Assembly: GCF_000315625.1 (NCBI RefSeq)
Contig: NW_005434620.1
Location: 185,631 to 249,630, forward strand
Direction of reading: 5' to 3'
Origin: Guillardia theta CCMP2712
Lineage: Eukaryota > Protista > Cryptophyta
Length of the DNA: 64,000 bases
Position numbers and translations under genes: made by a program. Every line of letters begins with the position of its first letter. Within the stretch, counting starts at the first letter, position 1. Under the pieces are notes generated by a model. That model was given only the letters and a program-made list of their open reading frames with translations, was not told where the DNA came from and searched no databases. Positions 12,719 to 63,790 of this stretch are shown piece after piece.

Positions 12719-14028
12719 TCAACTTTCACATGCTCGTCTGACGAGAACGACGTCTATGATGCTTCTCTCGTCCTTGCTCACCCTCAAGAACCTCAGCGAC
12801 ACTTGACTCCCTTCCTCTCCTGCCAGCCCGTCAGCGATAAGGGGGAAGGCAACTGGATGGGGGAGAGGAGGAAGAGGAACGGCAGGGGGGGAGGTGGAGG
12901 AGGTGGAGGAAGGGGTGGAGGAGGAGAAGGTGGAGGTGGAGAAGGTGGTGGGNNNNNNNNNNNNNNNNNNNNNNNNNNNNNNNNNNNNNNNNNNNNNNNN
13001 NNNNNNNNNNNNNNNNNNNNNNNNNNNNNNNNNNNNNNNNNNNNNNNNNNNNCTCTCCACGTCCGTCCTCTTCCGCTCGTCCTCCATTTTCGCTTTCTCT
13101 TCTGCAATGCTATTCCTTTCTCGTTCCATCCTTGTCGTGTCTTCCTTGATCTTCATCCTCTTCTCCTCCACCCTCCTCCCCTCCTCCTCCACAGTCTCTG
13201 CAGTTCTCCTCTTCTCCTCTTCGACCATATTCTTCTCTTCCTCCACCCTCCTCTTCTCCTCCTCCACCCTCCTCTTCTCCTCCTCCACCCTCCTCTTGTC
13301 CTCCTCCACTCTCCTCTTCTCCTCCTCCATGCTCCTCGTCTCCTCCTCCCTCCTCCTCCTCTCCCCTTCAATCTCATCCACCAGCTCCGCATGTTTCTCC
13401 TGAAGCTGGCGGGACTCCTCCTCCACCCCCGTCAGCATCTCGTCCACGCTCATGGCTCTCCTCCTCCAGTACTCCTCCTCCCCACCTGCCTTCCAGCTCT
13501 CTTCGAACGACTCCACCATCAGCCTTCTCCTCTTGACCTCCACCTCCACCGTTCCACCAGTTTGCGGCCTCTCGAACTTCAGCTGGAGGGGAACCCCAGC
13601 AGCTCCCGAGCAGAGGCTCGTCAGGACCCCTAGGCTCCACTCGAAGACCGGCTGCTTGTCCACGGCCAGGAGTAAGTCTCCCACCTCCACCTCCAGCTGC
13701 TCTCCTGCTGCTGCTGCTCCGGCTCTTCCTCCACCTTCGGGTGCTTTCCCCTCGACTCGATCGACTCGAAGACGGCTCAGTCCGTCTTCTGACTTGTGAA
13801 GCTTGAGGACGATCCCAGCTCCCTGCTCCTGCTCCTGCTCCTGCTCTTGCGCCTGCTCCTTTTTCCTCCCCGTCAGGATCAAAGGAGAGCAGAACTGAGC
13901 ATCTTGCAGTCGGCGAATGTCCATGAGGAGGGAGGAAAGGAGGAGGGAGAGGGACGAGCCCTGCTCTTCGAGCCTATCAACGTGAGAGCTGAACAGGTCA
14001 AGCTCTGCTCTCCCTGTAGCCCTCTCAG

Positions 14029-14090
<62 letters not shown>

Positions 14091-17070
14091 GAATTGTGAA
14101 GTTGGTCGAGATTCCGTTGAGCAAGAAAGGGAGCAACCGGCGACATTCCTAGGCTGAAGTCTTGAGGTTCCCTTGGAAGGACAGGCTGAAGGAGGAAGAG
14201 GAAGAGGAGGAAGAACAAAGAGCAGGGAGAGGAGAATAAAAGGGACCAAGAGGAGTAGGGAGAGGAAGACAGAGAGAAGGGAGCGGAGGAAAGGAGGAGG
14301 AGGAGGAGGAGGAGGAGGAGGAGTAGGAGGAGGAGGAGGAGGAGGAGGAGGAGTAGGNNNNNNNNNNNNNNNNNNNNNNNNNNNNNNNNNNNNNNNNNNN
14401 NNNNNNNNNNNNNNNNNNNNNNNNNNNNNNNNNNNNNNNNNNNNNNNNNNNNNNNNNAGGAGGAGGAGGAGTAGGGATAGGACAGAGACAAGGGAGAGAA
14501 GGAAAGTGAGAAGGGGATAAAGGAGAGGAGGGAGAGGAGCGAAGGGCGGCAGAGGGAGAGGAGGGAGAGAGAGGGCAGGTCAGAAACTTTCACAGGAAAG
14601 GTTGCTCTCACCGTAGATGGCAGAGAAGTCAGAATCCTCGAGGAAAGAAGCTCCTCTACTGACGGATCTGAGCAAGGGACGTCACCTTGAACTCCCTCGT
14701 TGTTGCCCGGAACGCTCTTCAAGGTTTTCATAGGATGAACATCTCGAATTTCATGTGTATCTTCCTCCTGCATCGTAATCATCATTACGGTCATCATTGT
14801 CAATATCAATAATCATAGTCATCGTCATCGTCATTACCACCACCATCACCATCATGATCGTCATGATCATCATCTTCGTTATCATCCATCAAGAAATAAT
14901 ACCATGGCTGAAAGATGACAAACTTCGCGATGTTCCCCAAGCTGACAGCTCAACTCAAAAAACAGAAGAAGAGCAAAAACAGAACAATCACATCACTTCA
15001 CATCTCATTCATCCCCTCCCCTTCCCTTCCTTTTCCCTCCTCTCCACTCTTCTCTACTCTCTACTCCCCTAATCTACTTTCCTCCCCCCACCCCTTCCCA
15101 TCTCCTCCTCTTGTCACCTCCGTGAACGACGGGTCGTTCAAGCTCATCCAGTGGAACTCCAGCCCTTGCTTCACTTCTGCGAGGCAACTCCAGAGCTCCT
15201 TCACGCCCTCCTCCTGCTCCTCCTCGCCCCTCCTGCTCCTCCTCGCCTGCTCCTCCTCTTCCAGCAACTGCACGACGCTCTCCACAATCTTCATCCTCTC
15301 CATCGCATCCTTCAACCCCGTCCTCGCCAGGCTCGTCCGACGCCGCCAGACCTCCAGCTAAGGTGAGAGTGGTGAGAAAGAAAGACGTCAAGTAACGCTG
15401 GCGGCCACCTCGGACTGAAGGGACACGCTCCTCTCCTTGACCGCTTGCATCGCGTCGGACAGGTCAGACCTCTGCTGCTGCTGCTGCTCGACCTCCAGCT
15501 CGAGGTCCTCGATGCGCCTCTGCTGGGCCAGGAGCTGGTGCTGGAAGCTCTCAATCTGTTGCAAGCACAACTCAGCAACAGCAGTCAACCGGGAGCTCCC
15601 CCTCACACACCTCTCTTGCAGAGCTTGCAATCCTGGCTACCAGCTCCTTCTCCTTCTCCTCCAGCACCTCCTCCACCCTCCGCTGCCCTTCCCACGTCAC
15701 CAGCAGGACACTTGCGAGGACCATCATCGTACCGCCTGTGCTGCGAGCGTCGAATCTCGAGAACTCTCAGCCCTCCTCTTCTCCTGCCACAAGAGCTCAC
15801 GGAACCTTTCGGCTCTCACAGGAGTTTTGGTTGACCAGGAGCTGAGAATCAAGGGATCGGACCCGAGCTGAAAGTTCGTCGATTTCAATCTGAGGAGCTC
15901 GTGAGGAGGGGGGGGGAGCAGAGAGCAAGCGAAATAAACCTTGTCCTCGTCTCGCTTACGCAGCAAGCTCGCCATCTCAATCTTAGTTTCTTCGAGCTCT
16001 TTTTCTGATGAAGTTTGTAAACGGCGGTTGAACTTCCAATAGAAATCTTGTACCTTTCGTCGCCAGCATTGCTTCCCATTCCTTCTCAAGCTTCCGGGAA
16101 TTCTGTTTGACCTCGCGGAGCTTGTTGTTGCATTCTACCTGTATAAAAGTCTGAGGACAAGAAGAGCAAGGCAGGAACAGGAGGAAGAGGAGGAGAAAGA
16201 GGAAGAGGAGGAGGAGGAGGAGGAGCAGCAGCAGGATGAAAGTGAGCCGATTGTTGACACCTGTACTGCAGCGATCTTCTCGACCTGCAACGAATGTGCC
16301 TCCTGCACTGTCTGTCTGAGCATGGAGTTCTCTTCCTGCAGCTGCGAGGAAGCAAGGGTCTCATCCTCTGCCATCTCTCCGCTGCTCACTTCGCACCTTG
16401 AGGATGGTTTGACTGGCGGCTTCCGCTTTCTCCTTCCATTTCGCCTCCTCCTGCCTGCAGCGAGACTTTCAGCGAGCACGCGGCAATGGAGGAGGAGAGC
16501 GCTTTCCTCCTGTATCTTCTCTCTCCTTCAAGCTTCTGCTGGAGATCTGACTGCAGACTGTCCGGCATACCACCTTTGATCTTACTGGCCAACACCGGGG
16601 AGGGGCCGCTATGCTCGACAGCCCGGACGGGCGCTGGGTCGTCCTCTGCCCACTTAGATGTGATGTTAGAGTGGAATAGAGAGATTGCGAGGTCATGAGA
16701 TGCTCACTGGCCAGATGCTTGAGGAAAGGTTCAACATGGAGAGGATGGAATCGTCCCGTCGAGGTGTGCTGCTCGCCTCCTTTGTTGTGTTGGAGGACAG
16801 CTCTCGCCCCTCGCTCTCAGCTTGTCGAGCAGGAAGGCTTCTTTCCATATCTGCCTCCATCCTGCGTCCCTCTCCTCGCGCAGTCTGCGCCCCGTCGCGA
16901 TCCCTCCTGCTGGTGAGCCAACCACGATCTCTTGTGAAGGAGGGGGAAGCTGAGAGAGGAAGGGGAGAGCCAGGGGAGGAGGAGGCATGAGGAGACGCGA
17001 GAGCCTTCGCTTGTCCTCGCTCATCGTCTCTCCTCCTCCTCTCCGTCAACGCATGCAGCACATGCGTCAT
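12719..17070 (-). CDS. Large coiled-coil protein with PDZ domain(s); interrupted by two N gaps
   Basis: PDZ-like GAGIVLKL..VGDLLLAVDKQPV..LCSGAAGVPLQLKFER at 13570-13830; end of a second PDZ (GEEGSQVSLRFLR) at ~12780-12820; EEEKRRV heptads. Confidence 0.65.
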
Positions 17071-30239: not shown

Positions 30240-31933
30240 ATGCCTGACGAAGACCCAAACAAACAGATTCCACGTATCTTCGTGGGAGGTTGAATCTTGT
30301 AGCATGAAAGAAATTTACGCTGACGAATGTGCGAAGGTATGGCCCACGGTCGAGATCCTCAGAAACCTGTGAACGAGGAGATGATTCGAACAGTTTTTGG
30401 CAAGTTCGGAGAAATCGTCACCATCAAGACAGGTTTCTGACTTTTAGTTCTGTCGTGTTGCCTTGTGACACTGTCGAACAGGCATGAAGGATTTCGTGTT
30501 CATCGACTACAAGGACCATGAGAGTTGTCAGCGAGCAATCGAGACAATGCATCAGAAACCCTTCGATGAGGACTCGTCGGGCCCGATGAAGGTAGGAGGG
30601 GGTGAGTTGGGAACGACAGGGTGTGAAGATGCTTGTGTGCAGGTTCAATATGCTGAGCCGAGACGCGAGCGCCGCGCGGACACTCGGAGGTTTGAAAGGC
30701 GTTCTCGCTCCCCGGGAGGACGGGGAAATTTCATCCGACGTCCTACCCCTCCGCCGTTGGAACGTCCGAGAATGCCGGAGGGATATCCTCAAGACCGCCC
30801 CCGACATTATGAGGATTTCCCACCAGAACGTGAGTGGATGGATAGGCCAAGGTCCAGGTCCAGGTCTGGGCGTTTCGACCCTCGGAACGATTACAATCGC
30901 CCGCTCCGAAGCCGATCTCGCTCCCCCGGCCCTCCTCCAAGTGCCTACAACGACAGGTACATGGATCGTCGCCACGAGCATCATGGCCAGTATCGCAATG
31001 GAGGGGATCACGGATACAACCGAGACATGCCCCGTGACCCGACGATGCGTCATCCGGGCGATATGAGAGGTTCCGACCGCGATTACGGTCGTCAGCCAAT
31101 GTATGCATATCGACTTGTGCTCGCCGCTTGCTTTGGTATTGAAGCTCATTGGTGTTTGCAGGCCTGATGGAAGGTATCAACAGCATGGAAGGGGAATGCC
31201 GGATAGAGGATATGACCGTCAAGCTCCAAGGGAACCATACAATGCTGGCCGTGATGACCGTTACGATCGAAGGCAACCTTATCCCAGAGACGATCGATAC
31301 GACAGAATGCAGCCTCGCCGGGAGGATCGACCCAATGGAGGCCCCAACGGCCCAGGAGGATACGATCCAAGAGCTGCTCCTCGGAACGATCAATTCCGAG
31401 GGAACCCGCGACGCCCCCCCTCCCCGGCTAGGCCACCGGCTGGAGGGCGGAGCAGGAGCAGAGAGCCGATGGAAAACACTTCCGTCAGGAGGGATGACTA
31501 CGGGCAGTATGACATGAGGGGAGCTCGAGACAACGCATATGATAGACCAGTGGACCCAAATGCTCGGTACGGCATGGACAGGCCTGATGGAGGGAACTAC
31601 GATCAACCAGGTCGAGGAGGGCGTCCTGAGCCGGAGAACTTTCCGCAGCGATACGATCAACAGCCTGGAGGAGGAGACATGAGAGGCTACGGCAGGGATG
31701 CCCCCATGGATAAGTTCTCTTCCTACGGGAACGGCCCCAACGATGACGACCGAGGCCTGCCGCCGAATGAGCAGTCGAGGAGGAGGCAGCGCGAGGAACG
31801 CTTCTCGTCCAACAACCCGGGGGAACAGGTCCAGCTCCTGATGATGATCGACGTTGTCTTACCCTTCCTGCAGGATGCTCCTAGAGACCAAGGACGGGCC
31901 GCAGCGTCTGACTTTGATGATGGAGACATGTGA
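30240..31933 (+). CDS. RRM RNA-binding protein with an RS/RD/Gly-Tyr low-complexity tail (SR-like)
   Basis: Spliced MPDEDPNKQIPRIFVGG (RNP2)..IRTVFGKFGEI..KDFVFIDY (RNP1)..VQYAEPR, then RSRSP repeats. Confidence 0.85.
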
Positions 31934-32216: not shown

Positions 32217-35200
32217 TCAGATGTCGGAAGTCTCCCTGTAGCCCTTCCAAGATGCGGGAGACACGAAGTTGTGCTCTGCCATGGTCTGCAGGACGAGCTT
32301 GCCTGCTGCTCCGTCAGCCAACTCCAAGACACGAGGAAGGGAAGAGAGAGAAGGAACGAGAGCAGACGAGAAGAGGAGGCGGGGGAGAGGGAGAGAAAAA
32401 TGAACTTGGGGAGCAGGGAAGAGATGGAGGGAGGGAGGGAGGGAGCTCTACAAGAAGAGTTGGCGGGAGGGAGGAAGGAGCTCTACAAGAAGAGTTGGAG
32501 GGAGGGAGGAAGGCATGAAGGAGTGGAGGGAAGGTGGTCAACCTGGCTTGTCGTTGGGATAGACTTCCATGCATTCTTCCATGAGCTCCTTTGCCACGTC
32601 CCACTGCCCCTTGAAGTAGGGGACGAGGGCCTTCTCGAACTGCCGGCGCCAGTCGGCGGAGGTGATGGGAGGGAAAGTCTCCCAGAAGTCGTTGCCAGAG
32701 GATTCTGAAGGAGGAGTCAGCTGGGGAGGAGGGAGGAGGATGGAGAGGCTGGGCGGATCAGGAGGAAGGAGGCGGAAGCAGTCCAAGGAGGGCACAAGGA
32801 AGAGGCGCTCAAGGCACACAGGGGACGGAAGACGCGGAGAGTCGGGGAGGGAGGGAGGGAGGGAGCAAGAGGAGAGGAGAAGCTACCGAGGAAATTCATG
32901 TCGTAGTCGTCGAGGCTGAAGGCTCTGGTGTCGTAGGTGAAGAGGTCGATGGGGGTTTTACTGTCAGGAACTTTGATCTTGTCGACCTGCTGCTGAGTCA
33001 GAGAGAGAGAGAGAGGAGGCGAGGAGAGAGAGAGAGAGGAGAGAGAAGACAGAGAAGAGAGGAAGAGAGAGAGAGAGAGAGGAGGAGGAGGAGGAGAGAT
33101 GAACAAGTGGGAGACAAGGAGGGTAAGAAGAGGAAGGAGACAGCAGGAAGGATTGAGGACGAGAAAGGAGGCAGGAGGAGGAAGAGGGTGCCCGAGACCT
33201 TGCGGCAGAGCTTCTGGACAGGAGGGGAGAGGAGGTCCCAGAACGCGTCGGTCATGAGCACGAGAACGCCGTAGATCTTCGTTGCAGCCTCGAGCCTCTC
33301 CGACCACTTGACGTTGGGGGAGAGGTAAGTCGGGTCGATCTTGAGAGCTGAGCCGATGGCTCCCTCGATGGCCCAGCCAGCATGCAGCCCGAAGCCGAAG
33401 GTGATGGTGTAGTTGGGGATCCTTGCCTGAAGCTTCTCGTTGGAGGTCAGGCGAAGGAGAGCTGGGCAGGTCGAGGTCTCGAAGACGATTCTCAGCACAG
33501 TCCGCAGAGCCGCGTCAGCGGTCGAGACGACCTGGCCGACCGTCCGGCGCTCCGGCAGGCGCCACGCGAGCTGGAAGGCGTCGCCGACGTTTTGTTGGGA
33601 GCGCCCTCGTTCTCGGAGACCGAGCGATGCACAAAGTCAGCGACGCGATTGACGAAGATCATCACGTCCTCTTGCAGACACTCCGTGCAGTCAGTGAAGG
33701 ATCGGATGTCGCAGAAGCCCCAGACGCCCTGGATGCGCTTGCCTGGGATCAGAGCGTTCACGTCCTTGCCGCTGTTGAGATTCTCGGTGATGATGGTGGA
33801 GCCAGCCTCTCCAAAGGCAATCTGAAGCATCGTGGACAACTTGATCAGAGCTGCTGCGATCGACTTCGTCTCTGCGTCCCCGTCTATGATCTCCGTCTCT
33901 GCGTTCATCCTCGCCATCGGGTCTGCCATAAGCCCTCGCACCATCGCCGTCATGGTCTCCAGCGGCACGATCACCAGCTTGTTGGTCAGCTGCCCGAAGT
34001 TGAAGGTGGCGAAGCCCAGCAAAAAGGTCACGAAGATCACCGTCGAGCAGCTCTGCATCGCTTGGCTCTTGGAGTCCTTGGTGGTCTTTAGAACGAGCAT
34101 GGTACAGGGGTCCGCGTCCGCCAGGGAGGAGCAGGGGTAGCTGTCGCACGCGCCCCCGTAGAGGGTCCCGAACCCGAGCCGCCATGCTGCGATGTCGGGA
34201 AACCAGCGGGAGAAGGTCGAGTTGGGGTCAAGCCGGACGCTCTGGTTGAACTCAGTGCCCCAGGGGTAGGTACCTTGACAAGTTTGACTGCCGTTGAAGA
34301 TCTCGATGAGCTGCTCGGCCGGGTACCCTCGTAGGTCGTACATCCAAGTCCTCTGGGAAGGGCCGTAGCCCCACACGTCAATGCCATTCACTCGCAGATA
34401 CCGGAAGGTGCAGCCGATGGTTTCTTGCCGGGTTCCCAGCGTCGTCCGGTCAATGGGCGGGCAGCCGGGGAGGCAGGTGGAGTTGACCTCGGGCTGGTCA
34501 AGGCAGTTGTACTTCTGGAGGAAGCGGAGGGAGGCGGTAGCGAACGGCTCTGCGCTGACATTGTTGTCTGCGACGGTGAGGAGGTAGTCGAGGCGAGAGA
34601 GCTCGTCTTGGAATGTGCACTCGGAGGACTGGAACTCAGACGCAGTCTGGATGAGGAGGAGTAGCTCCCCAACGATGAGCATGGTGGCGATGATGACGAT
34701 GATCTTCCGTTGGATCCCGTCGTTGATCAGCTGGCCGACTTTCGACCCCTCTTGCTGTGTCCTTGATTTCTTCTTGATGAGCGTCAGGGCCTTGAAGATT
34801 CGGACGATACGCGCTGCTCTCGTCCCTGCTCGCGCCGCTCGCCCGGCTCGAGCAACGGTCGCGCTCCCCCCCTGGCCTCCTCCAAAGAGGCTGATGTCCC
34901 AGAGGAGAAGGAAGTCAGGGGCGAGGGAGATGGTGGAGATGAAGTCAAGGTAGAAGAAGAAGGAGAAGCAGTAGCCCGGCTTGAAGAGCGTGTAGAAGAT
35001 GAACTCCAAGCTGAAGAGGCAGAAGCAGAGCAGGACGATGGTGTAGAACGAAGGGTCACTCTCCTTAGACACATCCGCCATGGCGTAGATGTCGGTACCC
35101 CACAAGGAAAAGACAGTCACGACGATCATGAGCATAGTGAAGGCACTTTCCTCGGGATTCTCAACCACACCAGGGATCAGCGACTGAGGGCCCTCCCGCC

Positions 35201-36950
35201 TCCTCGCCCGCGCCTCCTCTTTGGCGATCCGCTTCTCCTCCGCCATGCGCAGCTTCTCGGCCTCGAGCCTCTCTTGCGCCGTCATCTTCTTCTCCGTCGT
35301 CACCTGCAGCACCTGCAGGTCCGATCGCCCCATGGAGCGCACAAGGTTGGAGATCTTCGCCATGTCCGCCTGCCGCTTGTTGATCTTCCGCTCCCACAGC
35401 TTGCGGTTCTTCGGGTCCCACTCGACCAGGTCGCTATCGTCGTCCACCTCCTTCTTCTCCTGGTACTCTTCCTCGTCGACCTCCTCGATAGGGTCGAGCA
35501 GGTGGGGGTTGAAGTCCTGCATCAGCTCCTCGAAGGTCTTCTTCCCTGCTGACGCCGACGGCAAGTTCTCTCCGTCGCTCACGATCTGCTTCGTCGCTAC
35601 TCCGCTCATGAGCGCGCTGGTGCTGCGCCGAGGAGAGACGCTGCAGGAGTAAGGAATCAGACAGCAGCAAGAGAAGGGGAGGAGGACGAGCAGGAGCAGG
35701 AGGAGAGGAAGTGCTCGACCTGCTGCTGCCACCGGTAGAAAGCTGCCTCTCCATGAAAGCATGCTTCTTGGTCAGACTCTCCAGCGAGACTCGGATCGGC
35801 AGCTCTCGGATCTCGTCGGGGAGTTTAATCCAGTACTTAGTGACCTGGAGGACTGTCAGGAGGAGACGGCAAGACTTCGAACGAGCAGTCACTCTTACCA
35901 GCCCGTCGTCGCTCTTCTCGATCGCCTGCACCTCCCCAGTTTTGCCCTCGTACCTGCACCCAACAGACTCACGACAAGACCCCAGGGCCCTCGCACGTGC
36001 CTGGAGAAGTTGGGAGGGAGGTTGGAGACGATGACTTGATTTCCAACTTCGATCGTGTTCCTGGACGAGGACTTGGAGTGCAGGAGGGGAATGTCAAAGT
36101 TGTCGTCCTGCAAGGGCGGAGCCGATTCTGGCGAGGACGGTGGAATCATCTCGGATCTTGCCCCGTCCGTCGCCTCCGCAGGCAGCCTGATGCTGTCGGG
36201 GAGGGCAGGAGGACGAGAGTAGAGGCGAGGAGAACTCTCACTCTCCTCCAGCTTCGCCTGCTCCCGCGGGTTTGCAGCAGCGGGCATGGGAAGAATTTCT
36301 TCGCTCGCGCCTGCACAGACAAAGGGAACGTAAGGGGAGCCAAGAGCTCGAGGAGGCCGGCGAACCTTCATCCCTTCCAGCGCTAGAGGAGACGGACGTG
36401 TGCTGGTCGTAGACAATCGTAGCAGCAGCCTGGGGGGCTGCTGGAGGGAGCAGAGGAGTTGACTGAGGAGGTCAAGTCAGTTCGGCACGTGAAGCAACAG
36501 GGCCCTCACGTCTGATTCTTGTTCCCCCCAGTCTTCTCCTGGATCTGACGTTTCTCTTCCAAACTCTCCCCCGCTCACGGTCAGGGGCAGGTCAGCCCCT
36601 TCCTCCTGCCGCCTGCTCGACGACGGCAGCGCCATCCGAGCGACGAGCGCGTCCAACGGGTTCAACTGTGACCGACATCAGCGGCAGCCTCCCTCCCCTC
36701 CCTTCCCCGCACGCACATGCTGCTGCGCGGACGACATGTCCAGCGAGTCTTCCCTGCTCGAGTCCGCATCCATGTGCCCAGGAAGGTCCATGAACTGCAC
36801 TGGAGTCTCGAACTGCCATGGGCCGTCAGGGCTGCTAACTCGAGGAGGCAACGGCAGGACCTGACTGTCAGTATCGTCCTCCTCGTCCGCCAAAGAGTGC
36901 ATCGGTGAGGGACCCAAGTCCCGAAGAGCTGGAGGAGCTCTGCCCATGTC
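32217..36950 (-). CDS. Voltage-sensor 6TM domain fused to a class III (adenylyl-type) cyclase and C-terminal TPR-like helix; frameshift at 33590-33593, 5' end uncertain
   Basis: S4-like VARAGRAARAGTRAARIVRIFK, HAMP-like linker, GFCDIRSFT, PNK(N)VGDAF, GFGLHAGWAIEGAIGS..IDPTYLSPNV..RLEAATKIYG, ending WKGYRETSDI*. Confidence 0.9.
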
Positions 36951-39009
36951 TCTTGCCTGCCGCAATGGAGCATGAGACGGTTGAGATTCTGACAGCTGCA
37001 GGAAGAGCAGGAGGGGCACAAGCAGAAACAGAAGGAGGAGGAGGGGCGCAAGCAGAAACACGAGGAGCGGGAGGAGGAGGAGCAGAAACAGGAGGAGGAG
37101 GAGGAGGAGGAGGAGGAGGAGGAGGAGGAGGAGGAGGAGGAGGAGGAGGAGGAGGAGGAGGNNNNNNNNNNNNNNNNNNNNNNNNNNNNNNNNNNNNNNN
37201 NNNNNNNNNNNNNNNNNNNNNNNNNNNNNNNNNNNNNNNNNNNNNNNNNNNNNNNNNNNNNAAAAGAACCAAAAGCAATATAAACATTATAAAATAGAGA
37301 CCCCTTTGCCCCAGGTGTCGACATTCAAGCTATGTTTTGTAAAACATTCCAATCAGATTTTGAAATCAATTCAAAGATCTTGAAGGAAAATCTGGCAGAG
37401 GATGAAAATTCTCCGGCACAGCGGTTCGGGACGGGGGGTGGGTCCTTTTGGCTATTCGGATTGAGTTCATGACAGCAGCCTGACGGAATTCCTCAGTACC
37501 AAACATTTTACTTATTTAATAGGGTTTAAAAAAATTCGGTTCGTTGTCCCGCTGCTGACTCCGTGACCCCACCTACTAACAACCTGTGTAAAGTAGACTT
37601 AGGGGTGGGGTTGTTGGCAATAGTCATTCCGCCACTGGGCAAGGTAGTCGGGACGGTTCAAGTAAGGTTGTAGATTTAACATCTCTCAGAACAACCAAGA
37701 AAGTGCGAGCGAGCTCCAAAGGGAAGGGAGGGGACAAGACACTCTGACAACCAAGAAAGACAGAAACGATGCAAAAACGGAAGGAGGAGGAGGAGGAGGA
37801 GGAGGAGGAGGAGGAGGAGCAAACCTTGTCAGTTTTCGATCGCTCAGATTCAAATTCTTCTCATCGCGCAGGCTCAAGGTGCGCGAGATGCCGGTAGCAA
37901 CCTGCGCAGAGTCAAGAAAGGGATGAGCAAAGAACGCCAACAGGAGCAGAAGAAACGAATTCAACTCAGAGTTCAGGCCAGGGAGGGAAACGAATTTAAC
38001 TCAGGGTTCAGGCCAGGGAGGGATGGAACGGATGGGAAAGTGGGGGGAGGGTAAGTTGGAGGCTGCTGTGGATACAGAGGAGTGGAGGAAGCGAGAATTT
38101 TCTCATCTTATCTAAGTAAACATGAGATGCTATCAACCATGCTTCCGAGCATGCGTGCTCCAGCCTCGTTCTCTGCGGAGTATGAAAGCCATGCTAATTC
38201 TGTTGCTGCTGATCTTGACCCTGATTCTGACGCCACCTCCACTCACCGCCCTGCCTTCCTTTCAAATCGTCCGCTCTCCTCAAGTCTGACCCTGTCATCG
38301 TTGCATTCTCTCAAGACTTTGATCCATATCCTCCCTGTCTTCTTCTTCTTCTCCTCCTCCTCCTCCTCCTCCTCTTCCTCCTCTTCCTCCTCCTCCTCCT
38401 CCTCCTCCTCTTCTGTCGTGCTCTGGCCCGTGCATCACGCCCGCAATGGCGGTTGAGTCTTCAAGGGGGGTGGTAACAAGAGGGTGGATGTAAAACAGGG
38501 GGTGGGGGTAGTCTCCTCAAGATACTCAAGGGGTAGTGGGGACGGACTGAGCTGTTGACTAAACGGGAGGGGTGGTCAGGAGTTGTAGTAATTGAGGGGT
38601 ACAAGGGTGGTTTCAGTTGCCATCAGCAGGGGTGTATTGAACAGGTAAAGAGGAGGTAGGGGTACTCGATTAGTGATGTGTAGCAGGTAGGTAATCTGGG
38701 GAGGGACGTAGCCACCGAAGGTAGGGGTACACAGATATATGAACGTTGAGTTCGAGGGGGGTAGGGGGTGGGGGTACGAAATATTGACGAAGGGGTTAAA
38801 AGTTGCCAGAGAGGGGGGGTAGGGGTTATCGAGGAAGTTTGACAAGGGGAGTAGGAAAAAATCTGAGTGGAGGAGGAGGTCGAGGAGGGGGAAGGAGGAG
38901 GGGGAGGGAGGGAGGAGATGGAGGACGGGGACGAGGAGAAGGGAGGACGAGGAGGGATGAGGAGGTGATGGAGCAGGAGGAGTAGGAGGAGAAGAAGGAG
39001 GAACCTGAC

Positions 39010-62800: not shown

Positions 62801-63790
62801 AACTGAGAACGGAGACGAGGAGGAGGAGTAGGAGGAGGAGGAGAGAGGGAAAAAGAGGAGGAGGAGAAAGAGGAAGAGAACTTTATCATGGGGTGTTGTG
62901 TCGACAGGTCGTTGAGCTCAAGCCACTAACTCTTCTGTCANNNNNNNNNNNNNNNNNNNNNNNNNNNNNNNNNNNNNNNNNNNNNNNNNNNNNNNNNNNN
63001 NNNNNNNNNNNNNNNNNNNNNNNNNNNNNNNNNNNNNNNNNNNNNNNNNNNNNNNNNNNNNNNNNNNNNNNNNNNNNNNNNNNNNNNNNNNNNNNNNNNN
63101 NNNNNNNNNNNNNNNNNNNNNNNNNNNNNNNNNNNNNNNNNNNNNNNNNNNNNNNNNNNNNNNNNNNNNNNNNNNNNNNNNNNNNNNNNNNNNNNCCTCC
63201 TCCTCCTCCGCCCTCCTCCTCCTCCTCCTCCTCCTCCTCCTCCTCCTCCTCCTCCTCCTCCTCCTCCTCCTCCTCTTCCTCCCTTCTCTTCTCTTCCCGC
63301 TATTCTTCTTCCCACTACTACTTCCCTTTCCCCGTTCCAATGCTCTCTTGCACCCGCTCCCCGTCCTCCCTGTCACCCCTCCTCCCCCTGCACCTGATCG
63401 AAGGGTCGGACAAGAACGCAAGCCCGCAAGCCACCCAGTGGCACATGATAATGTAGACGGTAACCACCTGGAAGAGAAGGGCGAGAGCTCAGTACATGAG
63501 GAGCGAAACGGATGATCGACATGTCGACCAGCCGAGGAGGGCGATAACAGGAGCAGCAGCAGAAGCGACAGGAAACCATTCCGAAAGGAGGGGGGGAGAG
63601 GAGGAGGAGGAGGAGGAGGAGCACCAGCACCAGCCGGAGAAAGCACCTGGAGGTAGATCCATCGCTGACGTATGTTGGTAGAGACTGTGCTGGCCTGCTC
63701 GTGGGATGAGTTTCAACTAGGGGACTCACATCCTGTCACGTAGAAGTTGTAGAGCTTGCGGAAGCGATAAATGCGAAGAGCCTTGCCTGT
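59826..63790 (-). CDS. Large multi-exon hypothetical protein; may extend past the window end and spans an N gap
   Basis: Many short exons with GT-AG borders (KALRIYRFRKLYNFY; YAHALKFASQVLCLLG; SCDFDRFCDKCD; REMRAMNEQLVRFKTEILKAVQE). No family recognised. Confidence 0.4.

Follow-up and report, generated by a model that had tools for sequence, protein, structure and literature searches.

Does a free-living alga couple its membrane potential directly to the synthesis of cyclic AMP (cAMP)? The question is raised by a gene on the minus strand of a 64,000-nucleotide (nt) stretch of DNA from the cryptophyte Guillardia theta CCMP2712 (contig NW_005434620.1, positions 185,631 to 249,630), referred to below as the window. 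An initial annotation, made from the sequence, had described positions 32217-35160 as a voltage-sensor adenylyl cyclase of the Paramecium/Plasmodium type in an alga. That span covers the gene from its stop codon to about S1, the first helix of the sensor, but misses five further 5' exons that reach to a putative ATG at 36947. Exon modelling of the window yields a nine-exon gene that runs from 36947 to 32217 on the minus strand, with an expected product of ~1272 amino acids (aa). Its parts follow in the order coiled-coil region, S1-S4, transmembrane helix 5 (TM5), outer loop, TM6, helical linker, class III cyclase domain and short helical tail. We put at roughly 0.7 the probability that this cryptophyte gene belongs to the family of voltage-sensor/class III adenylyl cyclase fusions, as do Plasmodium ACalpha and the 'K+-channel' cyclases of Paramecium. 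This family is among the few that join a voltage sensor to an enzyme instead of a pore. Throughout, the window sequence was analysed piecewise by exon, and an intact relative (P0003, 62% identical) served as a stand-in for the whole protein.

Relatives and range

The top protein match is a transcript of Hanusia phi (P0002, 89% identity), and full-length relatives are 52-62% identical. A family profile search retrieved 2483 representatives at E≤1e-30, the best 150 of which match nearly the full profile length. Relatives carry PF00520 (the S1-S4 part), PF26726 and PF00211. Because Pfam gave no match on the window's own pieces, family identity is drawn from these relatives and from predicted folds. 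In the Atlas, neighbours combine PF26726 with PF00211 and PF00520; their sources are diatoms, green algae, ciliates, apicomplexans and oomycetes. The first named Atlas cluster for P0003 is 'Adenylyl cyclase alpha, putative' (mostly Apicomplexa; score 0.98, 235 of 256 features), followed by ciliate and oomycete clusters; one Atlas cluster of the family is mostly Oomycota. Structural alignment of P0003, as the Atlas model and as our own, to the ACalpha cluster and to the ciliate cluster gave TM scores of 0.65-0.73 over 675-702 residues. The window's own piece scores 0.90 to an Atlas cluster with PF26726 and PF00211. The assignment to the ciliate/apicomplexan fusion is borne out by the relatives' Pfam domains and by the two comparisons of P0003, and membership in the family is well supported on sequence and model grounds, with homology to apicomplexan and ciliate members argued from P0003 and the clusters rather than from named Paramecium or Plasmodium sequences.

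Proteins with an S4 sensor and a class III domain have been described in Paramecium, Tetrahymena and Plasmodium (PMC10587447, PMC3283738). In the literature (PMC3283738, PMC10587447), the Paramecium/Plasmodium fusion is recognised by its S4 sensor, a motif block that follows TM6, a single class III domain and a TPR-like C-terminus; each of these features is present, or nearly so, in the window gene. Together with the six helices, they are shared with Plasmodium ACalpha, Toxoplasma ACalpha1-3 and the 'K+ channel' cyclases of Paramecium and Tetrahymena, systems described by Weber et al. 2004 and Muhia et al. 2003 as these are cited in PMC3283738 and PMC10587447. The window protein departs from the alveolate fusions in a ~420-aa N-terminal extension with three ~45-aa modules, in a much longer TM5-TM6 loop that is Cys-rich and glycosylated, in AFG for GFG, in Lys for the catalytic Asn, and in its cryptophyte host.

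That host is an alga, as stated at the outset, but the surprise is smaller than assumed, the family being already known outside alveolates. The homolog list of a Phytophthora study spans Paramecium, Plasmodium, Emiliania and Chlamydomonas and contains no Guillardia or other cryptophyte; the text of the same paper calls the family restricted to stramenopiles and alveolates (PMC12223298). The family has already been reported in oomycetes, haptophytes and green algae, and the present gene extends its recorded range to cryptophytes. This occurrence fits a link to signalling in flagella or cilia better than a trait special to alveolates. PPTG_13136 and PPTG_13761 of Phytophthora parasitica have the same combination of Ion_trans (S1-S4 only) and cyclase domain; a flagellar sensing role has been proposed for them, and this 2025 paper located a Phytophthora homolog on one flagellum (PMC12223298).

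Sensor, linker and the question of a pore

A 756-aa open reading frame (ORF) at 33492-35762 (minus strand, as are all gene features below) contains the S4 charge string RAGRAARAGTRAARIVR and terminates in GFCDIRSFT...GAPNK plus 32 out-of-frame residues. An AlphaFold2 model of residues 185-668, built on a 111-sequence alignment (mean predicted local distance difference test (pLDDT) 77.5, predicted TM score 0.76), contains six membrane helices: S1 to S4, TM5 and TM6. The voltage-sensor domain S1-S4 lies at 34761-35147 (ORF residues 206-334), with its helices in the window-sequence model, and the S4 string at 34800-34850 (ORF residues 305-321, then K324). The basic residues of S4 are R305, R308, R311, R315, R318, R321 and K324, positions occupied by Arg or Lys in 71-107 of the 111 family members. 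In S2, the motif F250-x-x-E253 has Phe in 109 of 111 aligned sequences and Glu in 103, with Asp in another 8; of the acidic residues in S3, D273 is kept in 110/111 and D283 in 102/111 relatives. As the S4 arginines, the S2 F-x-x-E and the S3 Asp are kept in ~100 or more of the 111 members, these features go beyond chance. In a sequence alignment to Kv1.2, which is weak (E 0.24), F-x-x-E falls on F233/E236.

Fold comparison points the same way. The top structural match of the sensor by VIA-align is the Ci-VSP sensor 4g80_S (Z 10.8, root-mean-square deviation 2.6 Å, 124/128 residues), followed by the sensors of Nav1.7, Cav2.1, NALCN, Kv4.2, Shaker, HCN and SLC9C1 (Z 8.9 for SLC9C1); for helical bundles, Z values of 9-11 alone are not decisive. 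Almost all of these alignments are limited to model residues ~10-145. A Foldseek search with the membrane part returned nothing significant (best E 0.55). On relatives, Pfam Ion_trans (PF00520) matches only profile positions 3-114 of 241, that is, S1-S4. Because fold, conserved charges and the Ion_trans matches in relatives agree, the assignment of S1-S4 as a canonical voltage sensor with a charge-transfer centre is firm as judged from sequence and predicted structure. Both the six helices and the Arg-periodic S4 of the initial annotation are present in the model and in the S4 string.

Ci-VSP and sperm SLC9C1 resemble the window protein in that an S1-S4 sensor without a pore is linked to an effector in the cytosol. 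In Ci-VSP, the enzyme sits directly on S4 and the protein is monomeric, whereas the window protein has two extra membrane helices plus a helical linker, and its enzyme must dimerise. The effector domains of Ci-VSP and SLC9C1 are unrelated to that of the window protein.

TM5 lies at 34647-34742 (ORF residues 341-372; model helix 157-188). The TM5-TM6 loop (34083-34646) is 188 aa long, contains 9 Cys and 5 N-x-S/T sequons, and is presumably extracellular, since these residues fit an outside location and the expected topology. It is partly folded in the model (pLDDT <50 for ~35 residues), has no Pfam match, and varies in length (~40 to 230 residues) and sequence across the family. TM6 and the linker occupy 33759-34082 (model helices 377-429 and 446-479). 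In the window-sequence model, the TM6 helix extends ~30 residues into the cytosol and is followed by a loop and a second long helix. A HAMP-like linker had been proposed here; its place and two-helix shape hold, but no HAMP (PF00672) match was seen at E up to 1 (P0003:405-530), and the region is PF26726. On these grounds a HAMP linker was rejected. Among bacterial structural neighbours, HAMP cyclases appear only at a TM score of ~0.5.

The linker also carries the FGEAG block (33801-33815), counterpart of the alveolate 'GXG motif after TM6'. F650, G651, A653 and G654 are invariant in the family alignment. The preceding residue is Ala here and Gly in most relatives: 95 of 111 have G-F-G-E-A-G, and the window clade has A-F-G. 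The block lies inside the cytosolic helix in both models (window residues 185-668 and P0003). It belongs to the Pfam 38 family PF26726 ('Helical_RasGEFs'), a domain found in RasGEFs as well and annotated on nearly all relatives, including two fragments (P0301, P0376) that start just before GFGEAG.

These observations bear on an older view, first proposed for Paramecium, in which the protein would be a true ion channel fused to a cyclase, its six-helix part forming a K+-conducting tetramer whose ion flux gates the enzyme. Cation conductance was reported for the purified Paramecium cyclase (Schultz 1992, as cited in PMC3283738 and PMC10587447), and the published GXG motif does lie in the conserved block after TM6. 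That block, however, is cytosolic and helical, falls in a RasGEF-type Pfam domain, and reads AFG rather than GFG in the window gene. In the family alignment and the window sequence, no P-loop or selectivity-filter motif, the mark of a K+ channel pore, was found between TM5 and TM6; the loop between them is variable, glycosylated, Cys-rich and free of any filter sequence, and the structural matches to channels span S1-S4 only. The literature is likewise reserved: PMC3283738 considers it too early to class the family as K+ channels and puts the GXG motif beyond TM6 in the cytosol, and PMC12223298 finds no pore-helix homology in the Phytophthora proteins. A water path through the sensor itself could still be opened by the small Ala/Gly residues between the S4 arginines. 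Taken together, these points make the channel explanation quite improbable, and the membrane part probably does not form a pore selective for K+. The 2004 pore-loop idea looks doubtful given the models and the Pfam helical domain. A K+ pore was rejected for want of a P-loop, and the 'ion channel' label given earlier to this architecture is not supported.

The catalytic domain: partner or lesion

The class III cyclase domain is encoded in two frames. Its first part (33591-33758) holds the first metal-binding Asp (FCDIRSFT) and the substrate Lys (NK), as placed by alignment of P0003 to CyaC (1wc1) and bPAC (5mbh), and its translation is identical to that of the Hanusia phi transcript. The second part (33199-33591), in the other frame, holds the second metal Asp (NVGDAF), GFGLHAGW, the Thr of DPTYL, the Lys of SPNVKWSERLE and the catalytic Arg. 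CDIR is at 33702-33713 and GDAF at 33574-33585. A single domain with both metal Asp had been reported for this locus and is present, split by a 1-nt frameshift and three introns; the second Asp is past the frameshift. In the P0003 model (mean pLDDT 82), the domain spans residues 528-725 and is followed by three terminal helices. By sequence, the P0003 domain aligns to Spirulina CyaC and bPAC (E ~1e-7, identity 21-24%), and its fold resembles those of PAC and CyaC cyclases (Foldseek E 6e-12 to 1e-8).

In the alignment, the substrate Lys of NK(N)VGD and the Thr of DPTYL have K and T1139 as their CyaC counterparts. Because the base-specifying residues are Lys/Thr, the adenine-specific, class IIIb-like type, the sequence points to ATP rather than GTP as substrate. 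A guanylyl cyclase was rejected, the residues being Lys/Thr and not Glu/Cys. In both sequence and fold, the catalytic domain is best matched by the class IIIb enzymes Spirulina CyaC, Beggiatoa bPAC and Oscillatoria OaPAC, which share with the window protein the Lys plus Thr/Ser base-specifying residues and a helical (coiled-coil) input linker. Unlike the window protein, they are soluble, bacterial and have the canonical Asn; the window domain also has a longer insert between GDAF and GFGLH.

The TPR-like tail of the initial annotation is there as a short helical tail with three helices in the P0003 model, but its TPR_2 match is sub-threshold (E 0.024, 15 bits versus a cut-off of 27). A precomputed TPR_2 match exists on one relative, P0077.

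Several observations weigh against the reading as a voltage-sensing adenylyl cyclase. The catalytic Arg is present, but the transition-state Asn, found in 94 of 111 family members, is replaced by the Lys of SPNVKWSERLE, a substitution that would cripple both sites of a homodimer. The assembled gene is frameshifted inside the catalytic domain. The protein collection, which may not include records from this genome, contained neither a gene model nor a transcript fragment from this very gene. PF00211 went unscored on the window pieces and on the closest relatives. The sensor is not joined directly to the enzyme, as TM5, the large loop and TM6 lie between, and in the literature on the family we found no report of direct voltage control of catalysis for any member.

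The Lys is not peculiar to this gene. It occupies the Asn site in seven members of the clade, among them the Hanusia transcript, P0001, P0003 and three further fragments. Because it is kept throughout the clade, this Lys is, as far as the sequences indicate, a selected clade feature and not decay. One way to accommodate it is suggested by paralogs. A search of the window's assembly (87,145,349 bases in 669 contigs) found at least 8 further family loci, several with canonical catalytic residues and some with a degenerate S4. In a FastTree phylogeny of the linker and first half of the cyclase domain (midpoint-rooted, without support values), the window gene groups with Hanusia and then with P0001 and P0003, while six other paralogs from the same genome fall in a distant clade. 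The closest paralog (contig C348, loci L002/L003) has lost the first metal Asp (FGFAIIRAFT) and kept the catalytic Asn.

The six catalytic residues of the window clade (D,D,K,T,K,R) and of the C348 paralog (I,D,K,S,N,R) are complementary. The window protein might then be the metal-binding half of an obligate heterodimer resembling mammalian C1/C2, with an Asp-less paralog supplying the rest, so that the complex would have one active site and two sensors. Of 110 representatives of the family, all six residues are present in 50, the Asp pair only in 33, the K/T/N/R set only in 21 and neither in 6; under independence, 9.6 forms defective in both would be expected. Asymmetric heterodimers in many members, on the model of animal C1/C2, would produce a pattern of this kind, but the deficit is small (~1.6 standard deviations), and the sequences are not independent. 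In Paramecium, knock-down of AC1 or of AC2 causes the same loss, that of the hyperpolarisation-linked cAMP response, and heteromultimers were suggested by the authors (PMC10587447). The enzyme may, however, tolerate the Lys, or the conserved Asn close by in SPNV could take over. We therefore hold the heterodimer to be a tentative explanation, one that falls well short of even odds, and we consider it a shade less likely again that the window protein and the C348 paralog in particular form the two halves of such an obligate asymmetric pair, sharing a single active site while each brings its own voltage sensor. If this were true, the half-degenerate members (54 of 110 representatives) would work alike, and the arrangement would be an independently arisen protist counterpart of animal C1/C2.

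For the voltage-sensing cyclase that we favour, a plausible course of events can be outlined. The protein would dimerise through the TM6 extension and linker helices and through the cyclase domains, as other class III cyclases do. S4 movement would be passed to TM5/TM6, from there to the linker and on to the catalytic dimer, and membrane potential would in this way set the rate of cAMP synthesis. Since the whole clade has Lys in place of the catalytic Asn, full activity probably requires a partner subunit that supplies the Asn. The outer loop and the N-terminal repeat module could provide a second input.

In the same genome, L005, L006, L009 and L010 (contigs C28, C233, C7 and C139, respectively) have canonical cyclase residues and an S4 mostly without arginines (e.g. 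ARSWQTARAGSHMA); judging by these sequences, they may be family cyclases that no longer sense voltage. With at least 9 such genes, some with degenerate sensors or catalytic halves, this free-living, culturable cryptophyte offers natural variants with which to dissect the coupling of sensor and enzyme. Intact orthologs are candidates for a voltage-to-cAMP tool.

The frameshift maps to 33590-33593, where the assembly has a run of four A residues and relatives imply five (AAC AAA AAC GTC, encoding N K N V). The frame changes within AACAAAACG, between the codon for the substrate Lys and that for the second metal Asp, a site at which all relatives read NKN[VI]GDAF. Past it, 131 codons can be read without a stop before a GT donor at 33198 is reached, and 130 of these 131 aa are identical to the Hanusia phi transcript; the 371 aa upstream are 89% identical. 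Taken at face value, one A fewer than relatives need would mean a recent pseudogene in this strain, or a shortened product that has the sensor but only half of the cyclase domain. The eight or more other family loci in the genome could cover such a loss, and the protein collection contains no 416-1323 aa entry identical to the locus (an intact product would have ~1272 aa), although such collections may not hold this genome's own records. The conservation after the shift speaks against a dead gene, less constrained parts differing by 11%, and so does the absence of any other lesion from the 3.8 kb of coding sequence and its eight introns. The shift falls in a homopolymer and the local assembly is imperfect, with a gap of 100 N situated 215 nt upstream of the putative start. 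A real frameshift is thus unlikely in our estimation. Because the site is a homopolymer, the lesion the sole one in 3.8 kb, the downstream conservation near-perfect and the 100-N gap nearby, a sequencing or assembly error is favoured over a dead gene on the sequence evidence. Further look-ups, in sources that possibly lack own-genome records, were negative: the 131-aa downstream piece as query gave no identical fragment, no contigs were returned when the frameshifted ORF and the Hanusia protein were looked up exactly, and an exact DNA pattern spanning the frameshift site was absent from JGI metagenomes.

Exons and surroundings

The ATG of the 756-aa ORF is not the gene start: exon 6 begins at 35640, after a 79-nt intron, and five short exons lie upstream. 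All exon pieces are stop-free, and the summed coding sequence of 3818 nt equals 3n+2, one base below ~1272 codons. The eight introns measure 51, 48, 47, 54, 79, 212, 182 and 240 nt; seven are GT-AG and one (47 nt) is GC-AG. Five of the eight introns in this gene are thus 47-79 nt long. The P0002 transcript of Hanusia retains an intron after ...LCRKV and is out of frame from there, so that it represents an unspliced or partly spliced RNA; the sequence of that intron differs from the window's.

Exons 1-5 (35720-36947) encode the N-terminal extension of ~420 aa, with three copies of a ~45-aa module (..V.V..LP......G..G.V.......W..L.D.VR.LPI..). The module is also present twice at the N-terminus of P0001; it matched no Pfam family and no PDB sequence. 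Exon 1 (36717-36947) starts at the putative ATG at 36947, carries the first repeat copy (DLPGH...) in an open frame and is followed by the 51-nt GT-AG intron. It shows weak similarity to the N-terminal repeats of P0001. The assembly gap lies 215 nt upstream of this ATG, and extra 5' exons are possible. Exon 2 (36489-36665) holds the second copy (ADLPLTV...WGEQESDVRALLLH) and is open, while its flanking GT-AG introns of 51 and 48 nt carry in-frame stops. Exon 3 (36001-36440) comprises a low-complexity Pro/Ser-rich stretch and the onset of the third copy (VGNQVIVSNLPPNFS). At the protein level, the match is best with the GC-donor intron that follows (35954-36000, 47 nt; NFSR|YEGKTG); a GT-AG intron of 49 nt would likewise keep the frame. 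Exon 4 (35899-35953) encodes the central part of the third copy, YEGKTGEVQAIEKSDDGL, which aligns with YDGCAGHVVSFDHDSDE of P0001. Its end (VTKYWIKLPDEIRELPIRVS...) is in exon 5 (35720-35844), which is flanked by GT-AG introns of 54 and 79 nt and has a tblastn match to P0001 residues 173-206 (E 6e-5).

Exon 6, the main exon (33199-35640), extends from the coiled-coil region to most of the cyclase domain and is one base short of a continuous frame. Its tblastn alignments to P0001, P0003 and P0002 run in two frames that meet at 33591, both pieces being stop-free. The last three exons were placed by tblastn. Exon 7 (32887-32986; VDKIKVPDSKTPIDLFTYD...) encodes the final strands of the cyclase domain, which correspond to strands 707-725 in the P0003 model. 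Exon 8 (32543-32704) encodes the TPR-like helical tail (FWETFPP...WDVAKELMEECMEVYPNDKP), corresponding to helices 758-805 of that model. Exon 9 (32217-32302) encodes the conserved end ...SPASWKGYRETSDI, with a TGA stop at 32217-32219; in its W.G.R motif, W and R are nearly invariant across the family.

Runs of N, marking assembly gaps, are found in the window at 37162-37261 (100 N), 12953-13052, 14358-14457 and 62941-63195. On the plus strand at 30484-31933, neighbouring ORFs encode what looks like the end of an RNA-recognition motif and then a long low-complexity tail rich in Arg, Asp, Gly, Tyr and Pro, resembling an SR-type RNA-binding protein.

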